A stretch of 63,797 nt of DNA, the filler included, from Reticulomyxa filosa (Eukaryota; Protista; Foraminifera), in NCBI GenBank assembly GCA_000512085.1. It is 18 parts of 18 records of this genome, joined end to end, with 100 filler letters (N's around TTAATTAATTAA, not from the genome) between each part and the next. Parts side by side here need not be neighbours in the genome. Positions count along the whole stretch, not along the records: positions 1,862 to 11,524 come from ASPP01004733.1; 17 more parts are not named here. One strand, written 5' to 3'. A program made the translations under genes and the position numbers. Below are positions 1,862 through 11,524 of this stretch, one piece after another. The notes beneath the pieces are model-generated. The model was given only the letters and a program-made list of their open reading frames with translations, searched no databases and was not told where the DNA came from. Numbering within the stretch: the stretch's first letter is position 1; each line of letters starts with the position of its first letter.

Positions 1862-2949
1862 TACTGTAATAATGTGCCGTCAGATCTATTTTCCAGTATA
1901 ATGACTTTTTTTGCATTCATTTGGATTTGTTGTTGTTGATGTTCTTTAAATTTTACCAGGAATATGTATTATTTCTTATTTGTGAAAAAAAAAGAAATTT
2001 TTTGCATCTTTGAAAAAAAGATATCAAAATAGGAAAAATTGTTTCGGTGAAGCAAATAAAATTATTAATTTTGGCACCAAAACCATTATTAACTGATATA
2101 AGAGAAAAAAGTACAAGATAAAATAAGTTAAATGCTGCTAATTTCGCGAACAGAGCTACAAGCGTTTTTTCATATGTATTGGTGATCGTTCAAATTTTTT
2201 TATATATAATCTTTTGAAAGATATGTAGTGCAATGCCCTACTAATTACAGTAGAAGCTTCATATGAACAAGGGAACCCTTTTTTCCTCAACAACCTTCAC
2301 TGTCTTTCTTCTTTCACTTTTCTGTTTTCTTATTTCTTGTCAGTGAGTTGTTTATCTTGATTATTTAATTACTTTTATTTGCCTTTTGAAAACATCTTTC
2401 AGTAATTACTTTCTTATTACACTTGGTGCTACCTCAATCTTCATACAGATATATACTATTATCTCTATTTTATGAACGAAAACACCAAAAAAATATTATT
2501 ATAAATTAAGTGATCAAAAAGATGTTGTTTCAAGCAATAAAAAGTGTTATACTGTTATTAGTTGTACGGCAAATCAAAGTTACATTTTTAAATCTAGATG
2601 TAAATTTGTTTATTTTTCAATACTACAATTACATAGTCATGTAAATATTCTTTTTCATTTCGTCACACTTGTGCATATTTTCTTTTGCTTTGTTTGTGAA
2701 AGCATCTTCTTTCTTAACAAAATTATATTTCTCATTAGCAAAATGTACGTTCAATAATCGAATTTCTTCATTTAAATTAAAATTTGCCCGTTTGATAAAT
2801 ATTGCAAATCTTTTATTTGTCTATTGCGTTGTTCTCACACATTATACATGTTTATATTTTCGTTCTTCTTTTCTAATTATATTCATAATATAGCTGTTCT
2901 GTCAGTTGAACATGATACAATAAATTGATTTCTTGTATAAAATTATATA

Positions 2950-3140
2950 CGAAATATCAGTCATTCATGCACTTTTAATTATATCAATATATTGTCTGTT
3001 TTTGCACATTATATATAAATTGTTGTATATGACGAAAAATCTATATTGAGCAACTGCGTGAATGTCCTTCAAATTTTAGCAGTTCTTTTACTGATTTCAC
3101 GTTACACAATCGTGCAGTTTTATCGGACTAACATGACATA
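2950..3140 (-). pseudogene. Degenerate WD40-repeat remnant
   Basis: Minus-strand translation SC*SDKTARLCNVKSVKELLKFEGHS is a decayed WD40 unit with a stop. Boundaries are approximate. Confidence 0.55.
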
Positions 3141-3981
3141 AGTAACTCAACATATGTGGAAAAATTTATGTAGATTATAAAACATACACGCTTTGTTAAT
3201 TCATATGTTGTCACAATTTTTTTCCAATGTTAGCATGTGCCATACTCAACTTTATACCATCTTTCTGAAATCACCACTCAAGTGACTCCATGCATGATCG
3301 ACACATATAGTTTGTTTTGATATTCAATATTTCGATTTTTTTTTTTGCAAATACAAGCATTTAACCATTTGATGATACCATTACTCCGCCATATCATCAC
3401 TTGCAGATAGTCTTTATTAATCTATACTTCTATATATATAGATACAATTTATTTGTCAATATATAATATAGAAAAAAACTAATTGTTTAACAATTATGTC
3501 AATGTCAGAAGTCCGTCCAAAATTTAGTTGTGGTTGTTGGAGCTAGTCTTGGCAGTCATTTTGATTTTGCTTGTTGTTAAATGTAGCACTGCATTATCTT
3601 TTATGTTAGTAGTCGTTTCTAGTAGTAAAAAACAACCTTTTTTTGGTATACGTTCAAATGCTCCTTGAAAAAGTCGAAAGTACAAAAAAAGTGTTGAAAG
3701 TTGATCTAGTGTATTTTAAAAACGATATTTGACATAATCAAAAAAGATTGTCTGACCCATTTTATGTCAACGCGATATAGATTAAGTGTAAGTCTTAGTT
3801 TCTTCACTTGCAGCAGTTATTTGTGCAATACGTTTTTTAATATTGAATTTCTATGAAATAGCCGATACAACCAAAAAAGATGGTGTGCTCTGAATTTTGA
3901 TCGTGCAAATAACTTTCAAGCTCAAACTTCAAAAAGATCTCTGCTAGAGATCGGTTATCTTTTAGCTTTCAAAAGAAACAA

Positions 3982-5533
3982 ATGGACACATTAATAGAAG
4001 AATTTCAGAGTATAAGTCCACCTGACGTTACTGCCTTGTACTACAGATATGCAAACGAAATCGTAAACACTGTACTTCTTCAACGCAAAAGTATAGCTAA
4101 ATATTGTGACATGTATGGAGTTACATTATCCGGGTGTGTACAAAAACAGCTTGCTATTCCTCATTTATCTTGTGGGTATTTAGTATTCCTATATTATTTA
4201 AAAGAAAAACAACTGAGAGACAATTTTAAATCGCTGCAAACAAAACATAAGAATATTCTCAAGCAAATTCAAAAATGCGTCAAAAACGAAACAACAACTA
4301 AAAACGAAATAAAAATACTGAGACATTCAAAACCACCATTGAGAATAAAGTGGAAAGGATTTGAGTATCACATTGTAATTGCTTGGACTTTTTGGAAACG
4401 ACAATATTGTTCGTTTCACTACACTCAAAACAATGTTCATGTGTATCCATTTTCTCCAGAGCAATTACAAATAGCTGCCAATGATTTGATTGAGGAAGCA
4501 TCAATTCATCAAAGATATATTCGAAAGATGGGTAGAGCACACGGACAATTGAAGAGCTTTTTTGGAAAAAAATATGTGTGCTTCACTGTCATTGCTTCGA
4601 GTATATTATATGAGAGAAGAATTGGTTGGAAAGAACACCCGATTAGCAATATTGTATTTGAAATTATGGCAACACGTTACAATGAAAGTTCAATCGCACC
4701 TTTCAAACAATTCTTTGGAGGTTATTTGTGCCCATTTGTTTTATAAACAGAAAAGGATACGTCAACAAGCTAATACTCCAATTTCTGTATTTGATATTAT
4801 TCGACAATTTTTTGAGTTAATAATGCAAATCAAGAGAAGTACTGATAGAACTTGGGTCATTGACTGGCCGTATCGACGAAGCAAATTCCAATGTTTGGTC
4901 TCAGCTCATGACATCGATTATTATAAAAGACAACCTAAGCACGGCGATATTGTAATTTTGGATAATCTAATTATACGTTAAAACGCAAAAAAAAAAAAAA
5001 AACACACAAAGGAAAAAATTGTTTTTGGGCTGATGTGTACAACATTACAGAAAAGCTGAAACGCAAAGATCTGTTTGATGTGGATGAAGATGCGTTGAAT
5101 CATATCAATGATAATCTATTCATGCAATCTGTTGATTTGATTTTCGCTTCTTTCAGTTTTTTTTTTGTTATTGCACTTTTGTTGGATCCTTTCCCAAAAT
5201 GATCCTCCTTTTTTTTTTTTTTTTGCAAAACAAAAAAAAAGGATACGTAGACGCTCAACTAAAATAAATACATGCCGGATAGGACGTGAATTAGAAGTGA
5301 ACCGTACCGACTTCTATGATCATTCGACAACAGCCAATGTCGCCGAGCGCCAAATGCGATCAAATGAATTGTATCAAGGCAATGATGAAGACGAAAAGTC
5401 GGACCAGATACAACAAAACACAACAGTGGATGTGAGGGTCTGCATGGTTTTCAGTGAGCCTGACCAGAGAGGTACTTATTCCTTGGACCGTTACCATGCA
5501 TACCTTGAATCGTCTAAAAAAACCGCATTGTGA
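3982..5533 (+). CDS. OAS-fold (2'-5' oligoadenylate synthetase-like) protein, copy 1; catalytic Asp residues absent
   Basis: Core 3982-4978 joins ORFs 3982..4746 and 4562..4981 through a one-base shift in a T run near 4560. Motifs: SGCVQKQLAIPHLSCGYLVF, FEYHIVIAW, YLKLW, SNNSLEVIC, VIDWP, IVILD. Probable further exons at about 5012-5130 and 5241-5533. Confidence 0.7.
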
Positions 5534-7078
5534 AATTATTCTTTACATTATCAAATGCTTTCACTTCGAATTTCATTACTAAAAATCTACTTTTTCCAAT
5601 TACCAGCTCTGTTGTGACTATCATTCGAAATTTCGACAGAGCACAATTTTTGTCTCAAATCAAACATTTTTATTTTTTTGTTTTAATACTAAAAATATAT
5701 TGAAATTTGTACTTTTTAAAGCCCAACTGGGATGACATTTTTTTCTTTGTTTTTTCCTCTTTTCGCTTTTTTTTCTCCTTTTACATTTTCCTTTGTTTTT
5801 TTCTCTTTTTGCTTTTTTTTAATAATTTTTCGACGGATAAATGGACGTGAGTGATTTTTGTTTGGAAATAATGTTTGTATATTTTGTGTTCGGTTATTTT
5901 TTTCCTCCTTTCTATCGTTTTGTGTAAACGCAAGAAACTTCTTCTACTTTAACGACAATGTTTTTTAATTGTCAATAAAAAATGCTTTACGTTTTCTAAT
6001 GGTACAAATCAACACGTTTTTTTTTTGGGCAGTTAGAAATGATTTTTTATGTTTACAAAAGGTGTGGAAGAATATTGATCGTTTGTTGACACCAAAAGAG
6101 GTATAACGTCTCAGCCGGCAAACACAAACATACTGCTGTGAGCATTTTACTATATTAATAAAAAAAAATGCGCTTATTGAATGCAAGACGGATGAAACAA
6201 TGCCAAAAATTGTCTAAAATGAATACTTAAAGATTTTCTGTATGAAAATCGACACTTTTGAAATTTTTTTTGGACGATATCTACATTCACACGAATAAAA
6301 TATTTCGTTGTAAATTGTAGAAAAAGATAAAAAAAACGTTGATATTTGTTTCAATTTTTCCATTCAGACTTACAAAGGTAAGAATCTTACCCGTTTATTT
6401 TGATCAATTCTTTTTGAAGCCAATGTTTATTGTTTTGTTAATTCAGTATTTTATCGTAGTCACTAGACACTAATCCAATATTTCATTTTTTGTTTTCAAC
6501 AGCGAAAAATTTTTTTTATACACATTCTCATCAGAACTACTAAAGTAATTGTCGGTGAAGATATTAAATTAAAGAGAGGAGAGGGCTAGCATTCCAAAAA
6601 AGAAAAGAGCGTCTCATTGTGTTCATCAAATCCTTAGGGTTTGGTGCACAGTAGTGAGATGAAGTGCTTCATATAACATATATAATGTCACTCAGGACAA
6701 GACTGATGATCTTGCACTTTTGCAAGAATCTATATTGAATTTTTAAAAGTTAATGTTGTTATTTATTGTATCCATTAATGTGTGATGGCTTGTGTGAGTT
6801 TAGTTGGATTTTCTTTTTTTAGTTATGACACAGGATGTACTCTTAAATTTTATCTTACAAACAACCTGGATGAGTGTAAAGAAGCAGTCGAATATAGTAT
6901 ATCAAAAGTCATATTTGGCAAAAATGTAAAAGTGAATTATCAAAAAAAAGAGATTTTAGGAAAAGACACGCCAGCCGTAAAGATAGTCAAACTTATTATT
7001 TTTGTTTCGAAATCCGAGTATCGCACCAATAGAATTGACGAGACAAGCAATCCCGCTAAAAAACTTAAAAAAATATTT

Positions 7079-7527
7079 TTATTCATTGCAAACTTGGCAT
7101 TGTTGAATTGGAAAACAATAAAAGTAGTAAACATTGATAACACGCCCATTAGCTTTATTTTTTCTGTGAAACATTTTGAATTTGGATTTGGGATGTCTAG
7201 AGATGCGCATAATTCTTTCACAAGTACGCAAATCTACTGGACGACGCTCTCGATCTAAATATACAACATAAAATTCAGAAGCAGTGAACCATCTCTTGTT
7301 AAATTCATTTTCACAAATGCAAGCTATCATATCCACGATTGTGTATTGTTTTGTGTCTTCGCTTTCACTGTTTGACGAATCAGAACGGGGTGAATCTAAC
7401 ACAATTGAATTTATTGAGACTTTTGTTTGAATCTTTCCACGCACAGAAATTTCTGTCGATATAACTGGGCGTTGTTTTGAAGTTTTTTGATGTTTCTTAT
7501 CAGAGTCACTTTTATAACAACTTTCTA
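7079..7527 (-). CDS. Exon with Ser-rich linker and winged-helix-like segment; possibly the last exon of OAS-like copy 2
   Basis: Open frame ending TIVDMIACICENEFNKRWFTASEFYVVYLDRERRPVDLRTCERIMRISRHPKSKFKMFHRKNKANGRVINVYYF. Same strand as, and directly downstream of, copy 2, and preceded by an AG acceptor. Confidence 0.4.
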
Positions 7528-7629
7528 TTCATTATCATTTCAAACACACAACAAAAAGTGCTTTAGTCTTTAGAAATGGACACAATAGCATAGGAGGGAA
7601 GAAAAAAAAAGAAAACTGAAAGAATCTAC

Positions 7630-9293
7630 GATAAGTTCGATAAATTGAATTGTTTTGTCGTTGTTAATAATTTCCGATGAAGCTTCACATGCATCAGACA
7701 GATCTTTCCAATGTCTAAATTTCCTTTCCCCATTTCCTGCAAATATTGCATATGTAACACACACTTCAATATAAAAGTTGTTTTTTTCTCTTTTGTCTTT
7801 TACCACCTCTTAACGTATAATGAAACTATCCAAAATTACAATATTGCCGGGCTCGAGGCTTTGTTTGTAATCGTTGATATCTTTAGGTTCAACCAAATAT
7901 TGAAATTGGTTTTGCTGATACGGCCACTCAATTATTAGTGATTATATTTTTTTGTCGTTCATCAACGTTATCGACTCCGTTATTTTTTCAAAAAATTGTC
8001 GAATGATGTCAAATGCTAGAATAGGGGTATTGGATTGATATGTCTTTAACTGTTCGAATAAATGAGCACAAATTATTTCCAAAGAGTTATTCGAAAGGTG
8101 TTGCTTACCTTTCATTGCAGTATATTGCCACAGTTTCAAAAACAATACTGCCAATCGAGTGTTTTTTCCAACCAATTCCTCTCTCATGTAATACACTCGA
8201 AGTAATGATAATGATGCACTCATGTTCTCTTCTAAAAAATTTTTCCATTGTTCATTCGCCTTCTCAATATGTCTTTGATGTATTGGCGCTTCATCAATCA
8301 AATCATTGGCAGCCATTTGTAATTGCTCCATTGAAAATGGATGTACATGAACATTGTGTTGGATGTAATGAAATTCACAATATTGTCTTTTTGAAAATGT
8401 CCATGCTATTGCAATATGATATTCCACTCCTTTCCATTTCATTTTCAAGATTGATCTTGAGTGCTCCAATATTTGTATTTTATTTGTGCGAAGCTCTCTT
8501 TTTATTTGTTCAATGGATTGTTTGATCCACTTGGAAATATCTTCATGTTTATTTTGGAGTAAGCCAAGATTATTATGGTCCAAATGCTTTTCTTTCAAAT
8601 GATATAAGAATACCAAATACCCACAAGATAATTTGGGAATGGCAAGTTGTTTTTGTACACATCCAGATAATGTCACTCCATAAATACACGAAAATTGACA
8701 TTTTTTGTCATAATCTCTACTTTCTCTGTATTTGTCCAATATGCTATTTATAAAATCATTTGCGAGCACATAATATAGGTTAATGTCGTCAATTGAGATT
8801 ATTTCTTGGAGTTTATGTTCAAGTGAGATCTGGAAACCCGAACTGTCTGTTTCCTGTCCAAAAAAGCGACTCTATTTTTAAAATTTTTTTATTTGAAGAT
8901 ATTTTATTAATGTTGTTAAATACTTTTTGTTCGGATCAGAAACAAAGGCTTTGTCAAATACTTAACATATTTTAACACAATCTTGTTAAGTTCATTGGCC
9001 CATACCATTTTAACATTTGCAAGCCGAAGCCAATGTTCAATTATTTGATTGACTTTTTTCCCTGTCTTTTTTTAAAACATTTCTTTCGCTTGTGCAGTTG
9101 TTAATGGGGACAAGTTTTTACCATAGTGAGTGAGTGTAGATTTTTCATTCCGGCTACGTTTTAAGTGCTCTTGATTGAATTTCAGCTGCCAAAAAAAAAG
9201 TTGAACTTTAGACCTGTCCCCAAAACGGACACGTTTTAGTGGTACAAAGAACACCATTTTTTCACTTGAGTTAAAATTATTAGCATCGGCCAT
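7630..9293 (-). CDS. OAS-fold protein, copy 2 (spliced; in-frame TAA at 7942-7944, so possibly a pseudogene)
   Basis: Core exon 8871-7814 is highly similar to copies 1 and 3. The frame continues past the TAA as SLIIEWPYQQNQFQYLV..GNIVILDSFIIR. A GT-AG intron at 8966-8872 joins the upstream exon IIEHWLRLANVKMVWANELNKIVLKY in phase. Downstream exon KFRHWKDLSDACEAS. Confidence 0.65.
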
Positions 9294-10031
9294 TTAATAT
9301 CAAGAAACTGTTATTGTTTGCGAAAATAGACAGCTGTATTTTTAAAATAAAACTGTGAAAACAATCAATTTATGGAATAATAAAGGTCTCGATTTGTTAA
9401 GGGAAAAAGGTAATTAAAATTTGTACGTAAAATTGCATAAATAGAAAATATCATCATTTTCTATTGTGGAACGTCTGCTGATAGTATTAGTGCACTAACT
9501 GTAATACGATAGGTGTTTACTTAAAAGAGAATAGGAGTTTTCATAAAACGAAAGTAAATTAAATAATAAAACAAAATAACAAAAGGAAAGTAAAGAAAAG
9601 TAACAAAGTAAAAAGTAAGTTGTTGAAGAAGTTTAACCTACTGGGATTCCTCCGTTCCCTTGATGTTAAGATCTTATAATAGGGACTTGCTTACTATATT
9701 TTTTTGAATACTGTAGTCTGCAATGATATTGTTTAACAGAGTACTTTTCAAAGTTTATTGGGAATATAATTTAAAACGAAGTCTTTGACTAAACTCATTT
9801 CCCAGATCGTCCTAGTGTATTTTCTCCTTTAATGCATTTGACTTTCTTCTTGACAGTGTTTTTTTGCAAAATAAAAGTTGCATAATTTGTAGATTTTAAA
9901 AAATTTTGGAGCAATATTTTTTACATTTTGAAAATTTTGAAAAAAATATTTATGATTTTTCACGTGTTTCTATAAAATTGCGTTCTGCGGGAATTCATTT
10001 GATCTTAATTCGGCTTTCACAAATCCAAAAG

Positions 10032-11152
10032 ATGTCGGACGAAAAGCAAGGGATTATTTCACAATGCCACGCCAATTTGGAAGAGACTCTTGGAAAAGTG
10101 ATTTCCTCTGACGCTGTTGCTTTGTACTACAAATACGCTAATGAATTTGTGAACAGTTTTTTGCGCAAAACAACGATTCAAGACTATGGCATTTATGGTG
10201 TAGCATTATCTGGACATGTACAAAAACAACTTGTCATTCCTGGAGTATCTTATGGGTATTTAATATTTTTTTATCATGTAATTCAAAAAGAGCTTGACGA
10301 CCTTGAACCGTTTCAAACAAAGTATTATACAATTCTGGAGAAGATTGAAACACACATTAAAGAGATAATGAGTATTGGCGTTAAAGTAGAAATACTAAAT
10401 CGTTCAAAGTCATCATTGAGAATAAAATGGAAAGAGTTTGAATATCACATAGCAATAGCTTGGACATTTTCGAAAAGACAATATTGTTCATTCCATTATA
10501 CTGAAGAGAATGTGCATGTGTATCAATTCTCTCCAAAGCAATTGCAAGATGCTGCCAATAATTTGACTGAAGAAGCGAAAACTCATCGAATATTTATTGA
10601 GAACGCGGGTAAGCAGTGGAAAAGATTTTTCAAAAAGAACACGGAGGCGTCATTGTCATTACTTCGAGTGTATCATATGAGAGAGGAATTGATTGGAAGG
10701 AATGCTCGATTGGCAGTGGTGTATTTGAAATTGTGGCAGCGTGCTCAAATGAAAGATAGACAACATCTCTCGACCAATTCTTTGGAGGTTATTTGCACTT
10801 ATTTGTCAAAAACGCGTGAGTCCAATGCTTTTGTTCCTACACAAGAGATTATTAAAAATTTTTTCAAATTGATGCAAATCAACAAAGACAATAAGCCAAA
10901 GATAATCAAATCGCCATATCTAATAAGCAAATTGGACGGGATCGAGTGTAATTCCGACAATATAGTAATTCTGGATTATCTTTACGCACGTTAAAAAAAA
11001 TAATGATGGAATAAATACCACTAGATTTGTGTATACGTGTCGTGTACACAATGATATAGAAAAGTTAGAAAAGAAATTCCGATGGAAACATTTGTCTGCT
11101 GCGTGTAGAAAGTCATTGAAAATTAGCAAGACAACTGCATTTGAACATCCTT
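10032..11152 (+). CDS. OAS-fold protein, copy 3 (core uninterrupted); catalytic Asp residues absent
   Basis: ORF 9906..10994 has SGHVQKQLVIPGVSYGYLIFF, FEYHIAIAW, ASLSLLRVYHMRE, YLKLW, STNSLEVIC and IVILD. Downstream segment KFRWKHLSAACRKSL is homologous to copy 2. Confidence 0.75.
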
Positions 11153-11271
11153 TAGTTTCCCTCAGTTTGTTTTATCAAAGAATTTTTTTTCAAATAGTAC
11201 AAAAAAACCGTACACAATTTTAAAAAACTCAGTACAATTAAAAAAAAAAACTTTTTTTTAAGTATCGTCAG

Positions 11272-11524
11272 AGCTAGAACGTTTCGACTTGGACTCAGCA
11301 GCCAATAGCACAACCTGCCGAACGCCATCCAAAGAAAATGGACAACAGTTCGACTTTGACTCAGCAGCCAATAACACAATCCGCCGAATGCCATCCGAAG
11401 AAAATGGACAACAGTTCGACTTTGACTCAACGGCCAATGATACAACCCGCCGAACGCCATCCAAAGAAAATGGACAACAATTCGACTTTGACTCAGCAGC
11501 CAATAACACAATCCGCCGAATGCC
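11272..11524 (+). repeat. 66-bp tandem repeat (about 4 copies, truncated by contig end), probably coding
   Basis: TTCGACTT recurs every 66 nt and encodes 22-aa units of the type DSAANNTIRRMPSEENGQQFDF. Confidence 0.9.

Follow-up and report, generated by a model that had tools for sequence, protein, structure and literature searches.

A foraminiferan family of OAS-fold proteins with repeated loss of the catalytic triad and one triad-less clade under purifying selection

The window analysed here is a stretch of 63,797 nucleotides, filler included, joined from 18 records of the genome of the freshwater foraminiferan Reticulomyxa filosa, and our subject is a group of three genes on contig C4733 (window positions 1862-11524). 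The genes follow one another in the order plus, minus, plus, with starts at 3982, 8892 (minus strand) and 10032, and are 71-72% identical in DNA; we refer to them as copy 1 (RFI_05369), copy 2 (RFI_05372) and copy 3 (RFI_05373). A first-pass annotation, made from the sequence alone, had described three paralogs in this arrangement, which we confirm, and had taken them for OAS-type genes deprived of their catalytic aspartates. The feature is genuine and extends beyond what that annotation saw. By descent and by fold the window genes belong to the OAS superfamily, and although the catalytic triad has been lost, the clade that contains them is maintained by purifying selection, which is strongest near the former active site.

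All open reading frames (ORFs) of the family stop at one shared place, a phase-1 GT intron behind an I-x-D-N-L motif, and the short exon that follows carries the last helices of the OAS fold. Gene models were searched exon by exon, and the joined proteins are existing database entries only. In copy 1, exon 1 (3982-4976, plus strand) would encode the nucleotidyltransferase (NTase) core and C-lobe of a pseudo-OAS, with the P-loop S-G-C at 4129 and with C, Y and H at the triad positions (4171, 4177 and 4369). Intron 1 (4977-5050, GT..AG, phase 1) is predicted from a position conserved across the family, and its junction is supported by the metagenomic homolog P0027, which is continuous across the exon 1/exon 2 boundary. 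Exon 2 (5051-5155) supplies the last OAS helices, without the conserved Trp. A run of six T (4558-4563), one T longer than in paralogs, causes a +1 frameshift. The extra T is also present in two other paralogs, and the ratio of nonsynonymous to synonymous substitution rates (dN/dS, or omega) on the terminal branch is 0.22; for these reasons the frameshift is likely to be an assembly error or a very recent lesion. Copy 1 is probably functional and its frameshift probably an error of assembly.

Copy 2 lies on the minus strand and is organized as exon 1 (7815-8892; pseudo-OAS core with C 8625, Y 8619 and H 8418 at the triad positions), intron 1 (7737-7814), exon 2 with the OAS terminal helices (7617-7736), an intron that holds the join of a 497-nt deletion (7525-7616), and a last exon (7079-7524). 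It has no in-frame ATG where the family start usually lies. A premature TAA (7942-7944) stands where a 90%-identical paralog on contig C45437 reads AAA, and the deletion took out the winged-helix exon 3 that this paralog still has. Because of the stop codon, the exon loss and a rearranged 5' end, copy 2 has probably died recently. The segment at 6018-8745 is colinear and approximately 90% identical with contig C45437 (1-3283); the similarity ends at the 5' end of copy 2 and includes more than 1 kb of 3' flank. It may represent a segmental duplicate or a second haplotype with a mosaic 5' end. Both contigs carry a second, divergently oriented paralog, and these two are about 50% identical as proteins. 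A 158-amino-acid ORF (6782-7258, plus strand) overlaps the 3' end of copy 2 in antisense within the shared segment, and may be a shadow frame.

Copy 3 begins with an open exon 1 (10032-10989, plus strand) for the pseudo-OAS core, in which the P-loop reads S-G-H at 10209, its Lys lies at 10224, and Y, Y and H occupy the triad positions (10251, 10257 and 10446); the Lys of the KxW motif is at 10728 and the Glu of the LE motif at 10785. Intron 1 (10990-11059) is followed by exon 2 (11060-11164). The motif WKHLSAAC, which the first-pass annotation had listed with the long frame of copy 3, is real; it lies outside that frame, in exon 2 beyond the intron, a placement we draw from P0027, which reads straight over the junction. 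A second motif listed there, VIDWP, belongs to copy 1 and not to copy 3. Exon 3 (11263-11524) holds a 66-bp in-frame tandem repeat present 3.7 times, coding for a hydrophilic unit of 22 amino acids, and is cut by the contig end. The coding repeat (11283-11524) resumes on contig C8679 (1-154), which is probably the continuation of C4733 across a gap. We regard copy 3 as a family member that is still alive yet diverging.

Family genes are multi-exonic, and complete members have two further exons behind the OAS exons. Many members carry a domain, X1, that is found in active-type and dead paralogs alike. Its model (predicted local distance difference test, pLDDT, 84) has mostly winged-helix structural neighbours, among them Orc/Cdc6, the cullin WHB, histone H1 and Fur, with Z up to 6.7; the match is consistent but modest and names no family, and we treat X1 as a putative winged-helix domain. 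The second domain, X2, is Cys-rich with a C-terminal CxxC; in copy 2 it follows an acidic linker in the last exon and has the conserved W-F-T..F-Y residues. X2 matched no known family in the searches made, and homology between X1 and X2 is not detectable. None of the tails has the C-terminal ubiquitin-like domains of OASL; they consist of X1, X2 or repeats. Contig C14009 (L087, 1-2536) has an X1 exon and then several divergent tandem X2 domains, an amplified X2 array. Behind exon 2 of copy 1 there is a hydrophilic open frame (5165-5533, plus strand), possibly a third exon, which gave no match when compared with X1 and X2.

What kind of protein do these genes encode? Single sequences have no meaningful match in Pfam, NCBIfam or the PDB. 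The curated cut-off of Pfam OAS1_C (PF10421) is reached neither by the window genes nor by intact paralogs, and the best score (E 0.044) belongs to P0027 only. Family profiles compared with the PDB match OAS2 (E 6.5e-11 and 3.4e-13) and OAS1 (E 7e-6), with no significant match beyond these two, and the relationship spans the P-loop, the DxD strand, the third-Asp strand and the KxW and LE motifs. In the HMMER alignment the P-loop and the two Asp strands are in register with residues 30-152 of pig OAS1. Since single copies fall below the cut-offs and only profiles and fold reveal OAS, Pfam and hidden Markov model (HMM) surveys overlook most members of the family. Exon 1 of copy 3 was modelled with AlphaFold, template-free and with a family alignment of 40 rows as input; the model has a pLDDT of 91 and a predicted template modelling (TM) score of 0.89, and shows a pol-beta NTase core joined to an OAS C-lobe. 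Foldseek places pig and human OAS1 on top for this model (pig OAS1, E 2e-6, TM 0.60), and VIA-align gives OAS1 a Z of 19.4 over 273 aligned residues at a root-mean-square deviation of 3.6, followed by OAS2 (16.7), poly(A) polymerase (16.7), CdnC (15.5), NF90 (15.3) and Utp22 (15.2); the nearest solved structure is thus an OAS. The ESM Atlas agrees, its feature search listing OAS1_C clusters first (0.96; DZF 0.93) and its structure search being led by OAS clusters at TM 0.71. In the published tree of cGAS/DncV-like nucleotidyltransferases (CD-NTases; PMC10732462) intact R. filosa paralogs fall inside the eukaryotic OAS clade, and in our trees, built from members of the family alone, the window genes nest among these paralogs. 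The OAS fold proposed in the first-pass annotation is thereby upheld by model, structure searches and family profiles, though not by the comparison of single sequences with the OAS1_C, NTase and DZF profiles it had in mind. Its counter-hypothesis, a grouping with housekeeping DZF, Utp22 or poly(A) polymerase proteins, was decided in favour of OAS; such an ancestry is ruled out by Z scores below that of OAS1 and the lack of a profile match.

In animal OAS, D75, D77 and D148 are metal ligands required for 2-5A synthesis (PMC6019448). The corresponding columns of the HMMER and family alignments hold C, Y and H in copies 1 and 2 and Y, Y and H in copy 3, and so bear out the claim that all three aspartates are replaced in every copy. 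Overlooked at that time was the P-loop, where G-G-S has become S-G-C in copies 1 and 2 and S-G-H in copy 3, so that the triphosphate-binding Ser is replaced as well. By motif the clade is catalytically dead, for it has neither the triad nor the P-loop Ser of an active OAS. The P-loop Lys, the KxW Lys and the LE Glu are retained, as had been noted; these equivalents of K66, K213 and E233 are invariant or nearly so across 25 sequences of the clade. K66 and E233 are parts of the allosteric switch of OAS1 that is driven by double-stranded RNA (dsRNA; PMC11359028). The K199-equivalent is Arg; at the R195-equivalent there is no basic residue, and intact paralogs lack one there too. Arg occupies the Q194-equivalent in 18/19. 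The replacement residues are themselves held: His at D148 in 25/25, Cys at S63 in 24/25, Cys at D75 in 24/25 and Tyr at D77 in 23/25, amid synonymous changes and with posterior omega of 0.05-0.17. Copy 3 has lost both pocket Cys. The cores of the clade are basic, with an isoelectric point of about 9.

A profile search of the R. filosa genome returned 105 matching stretches. Among the fetched loci at least 56 show the P-loop segment: 30 have S-G-C..C-G-Y..H (the C-Y-H type), nine have D/E-x-D, with the third Asp in view in six, and 17 show other losses, so that about 47 of the 56 are triad-less. The assembly is fragmented and some loci may be alleles, and these counts are approximate. The suspicion of an expanding family is borne out genome-wide, and this genome also holds the intact relatives it called for. 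The C-Y-H copies group in a single clade (support 100/100, and the same with the trait columns masked), which dates the loss of the triad before the duplications in the window, as proposed. A second dead clade, of N-x-x..N type (N-x-N for short), nests among intact genes. The triad-less copies do not all go back to one origin, since joining the two dead clades fails the approximately unbiased (AU) test (p=0.0045); on these trees the triad was lost at least twice independently, with further partial losses. The N-x-N clade (L037-L040, L042 and L044) is recently amplified, with dN/dS of about 0.94.

Selection on the C-Y-H clade is purifying, in answer to the question of dN/dS among paralogs that the first-pass annotation had raised. 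Over 25 exon-1 sequences dN/dS is 0.40, with twice the log-likelihood difference from omega=1 at 352, an estimate that, like the others given here, is affected by gene conversion at the mosaic 5' ends. The value falls to 0.20 in the P-loop/DxD segment and to 0.22 around the third-Asp strand (the beta4-5 segment); for comparison, the N-x-N clade gives 0.94, and 0.24 is obtained for a set of four genes, two of them intact paralogs and two partly changed ones. Copy 3 sits in a three-member subclade with dN/dS of 0.71 against a background of 0.34 (p 1e-7) and a core omega indistinguishable from 1 (p=0.07). Neutrality predicts 12-16 stops in each of these frames, yet all are open, which indicates that the subclade is kept as proteins under relaxed or shifting constraint. 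The comparison of M8 with M8a is significant (p 6e-6), but the flagged sites lie in N-terminal and loop columns that are mosaic or badly aligned, and we do not count them as positive selection. The picture of a cluster of maintained genes therefore stands for the clade and has to be softened for the window, where copies 1 and 2 carry lesions and constraint on the subclade of copy 3 is relaxed.

Based on these observations we propose that the C-Y-H proteins are non-catalytic OAS-fold sensors or regulators of nucleic acids, evolving by birth and death, that bind without making 2-5A; we give this proposal a chance a little short of even. An active foraminiferan OAS would have given rise to a lineage-specific dead clade expanded in tandem, whose ancestor lost the metal triad and the P-loop Ser once. 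Its members are predicted to bind nucleic acid, most likely dsRNA, via the OAS surface and the winged helix, with no 2-5A product, and might act as pattern sensors, as restriction factors or as in-trans regulators of the approximately nine active paralogs, in a mode that could resemble OASL, Oas1b and the pseudo-domains of OAS2/3. In animal OASL, mutation of the triad ends 2-5A synthesis and seems not to alter dsRNA binding (PMC6019448); activation of OAS2/3 needs the pseudo-domains, which act as rulers for the active domains (10.1101/2025.01.28.635220); and Oas1b restricts flaviviruses without 2-5A (PMC12922763). The retained K66/E233 pair, the kept equivalents of K213 and K199, the basic cores and the winged helix of many members are consistent with this proposal. 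Several observations weigh against it: the R195-equivalent is not basic, approximately eight of the 30 clade loci carry lesions, the apparent positive selection lies in ends that align poorly, and the family has no link to viruses in this analysis. Conservation is also centred in the pocket, the new Cys, Tyr and His included, and exceeds what a pure surface binder needs, which points to a repurposed ligand site.

Such a site is the main alternative, and we regard it as unlikely. The ligand of the dead pocket would be a nucleotide messenger from the active paralogs, either 2-5A or a cyclic oligonucleotide, and the proteins would serve as receptors or sponges with the winged-helix/X2 tail as output. 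The replacement residues held amid synonymous change, the preserved triphosphate-binding Lys, the Arg at the Q194-equivalent and the presence of active-type paralogs in the same genome all favour it. On the other side, bulky Tyr and His may merely plug the pocket, D to Y and D to H each need one base change, and copy 3 is without both Cys. MiD51 is a dead NTase that binds nucleotide and offers an analogy. This lineage is not known to have an RNase L, and receptors of this kind would supply the effector of OAS signalling. A more specific form, in which the Cys/Cys/Tyr/His/Arg/Lys pocket binds an oligonucleotide messenger and the clade consists of OAS-derived receptor-effectors with winged-helix output, seems doubtful; if true, OAS signalling here would be self-contained, with enzymes and dead-enzyme receptors, and this could explain the role of OAS outside animals, where coupling to RNase L is not known.

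An improbable reading is that of a non-immune scaffold or RNA-regulatory adaptor, convergent with the DZF proteins NF90/NF45 or with Utp22 and engaged in RNA processing or development. It draws on the DZF and Utp22 structural neighbours (Z about 15) and on the dominance of purifying selection; against it stand the OAS ancestry and a pattern unlike that of single-copy housekeeping genes, with fast turnover, clusters in tandem, mosaic copies and triad loss that recurred independently. New chemistry is very unlikely: Cys (S63), Cys (D75) and His (D148) could make up a redox site, or one for a thiophilic metal (Zn/Fe), in place of the Mg site, as their fixation at former metal and phosphate ligands in 24-25 paralogs allows, but copy 3 has His and Tyr at the two Cys positions, and we know of no precedent. 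There is similarly little chance that the clade is neutral debris, dead OAS duplicates that segmental duplication has multiplied in a genome rich in repeats: the stop and exon deletion of copy 2, the many broken loci, the N-x-N omega and the core omega of the copy-3 subclade would suit it, and the neutral evolution that had been named as fatal to the idea of maintained genes may hold for single copies, but for the clade it is largely refuted, as a tree length of about 13 substitutions per codon, at omega 0.40, has accrued since the triad was lost and the frames on long branches stay open.

How does this family relate to known systems? Pseudo-OAS proteins are known in animals, and OAS genes of R. 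filosa are already catalogued. The CD-NTase tree of Culbertson & Levin 2023 (PMC10732462, supplements) includes five R. filosa proteins in its OAS-superfamily part, and the main text does not mention Reticulomyxa; two of the five are the intact-triad paralogs RFI_14454 (P025644) and RFI_15844 (P024262), and a third matches RFI_34063 by sequence. RFI_14454 and RFI_15844 are direct paralogs of the window genes, with 25-26% identity, the same intron position and a winged-helix exon. The R. filosa proteins of that tree with visible P-loop and triad keep D-x-D..D, whereas the approximately 47 triad-less loci lie outside it. Human OASL, OAS2 domain I, OAS3 domains I/II, mouse Oas1b and other inactive Oas proteins similarly have an OAS fold without the triad and are kept by selection next to active paralogs (PMC12922763, PMC6019448, 10.1101/2025.01.28.635220). 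The C-Y-H clade differs from them in its independent rhizarian origin, its roughly 30 stand-alone copies, the additional replacement of the P-loop Ser with a fixed C/C/Y/H pocket, and tails of winged-helix and X2 type where the animal proteins have ubiquitin-like domains or, in cis, an active OAS domain. NF90/NF45 and Utp22/NOL6 are likewise non-catalytic proteins with a pol-beta NTase and a helical lobe (Z 15.2-15.3), but they score under OAS1, share no sequence-profile match and are low-copy housekeeping proteins. Chlamydomonas, another microbial eukaryote, likewise has OAS-like genes expanded in tandem clusters, for which an immune role is proposed (10.64898/2026.06.19.733452; PMC10732462); the passage on them gives no catalytic status, and no winged-helix tail is reported. 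Bacterial clade C CD-NTases (CdnC) resemble the family in fold, and an intact R. filosa paralog matches CBASS_cyclase_a weakly (E 7e-6), but the R. filosa genes have introns and, unlike CdnC, neither a CBASS operon nor, in the dead clade, a catalytic triad. A literature search of incomplete coverage found no account of a protist OAS family with about 56 loci, most of them dead, that has a fixed remodelled pocket and winged-helix tails. OAS-like enzymes are present across most eukaryotic supergroups (PMC10732462), and coupling of RNase L to OAS is thought to be limited to jawed vertebrates (PMC12922763). Here a single protist genome contains some nine apparently active and about 47 dead OAS loci; catalysis was lost repeatedly and independently, and in one clade selection has fixed a new pocket. 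The genome thus offers enzyme/pseudoenzyme pairs for asking whether regulation or sensing by pseudo-OAS arose convergently outside animals.

Outside R. filosa, a search of 1.84 billion representatives found only four proteins of the wider family, in a Tara assembly, two JGI contigs and one NCBI assembly. The C-Y-H type is absent among these four, and no C-Y-H relative was found in the metagenome or viral contigs searched. Since nearly all hits come from R. filosa, these searches lend no support to a viral origin of the clade or to its wide distribution. A divergent subgroup (L055, L069, L070, L072 and the JGI contig L054) has N-V-N in place of D-x-D; its JGI relative has N-V-D, which places the lineage in another organism as well. 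The Tara assembly (23% GC) encodes at L051:9241-11268 an intronless member of 675 amino acids, whose motif reads N-G-D..D and whose C-terminal domain is basic and of a different kind.

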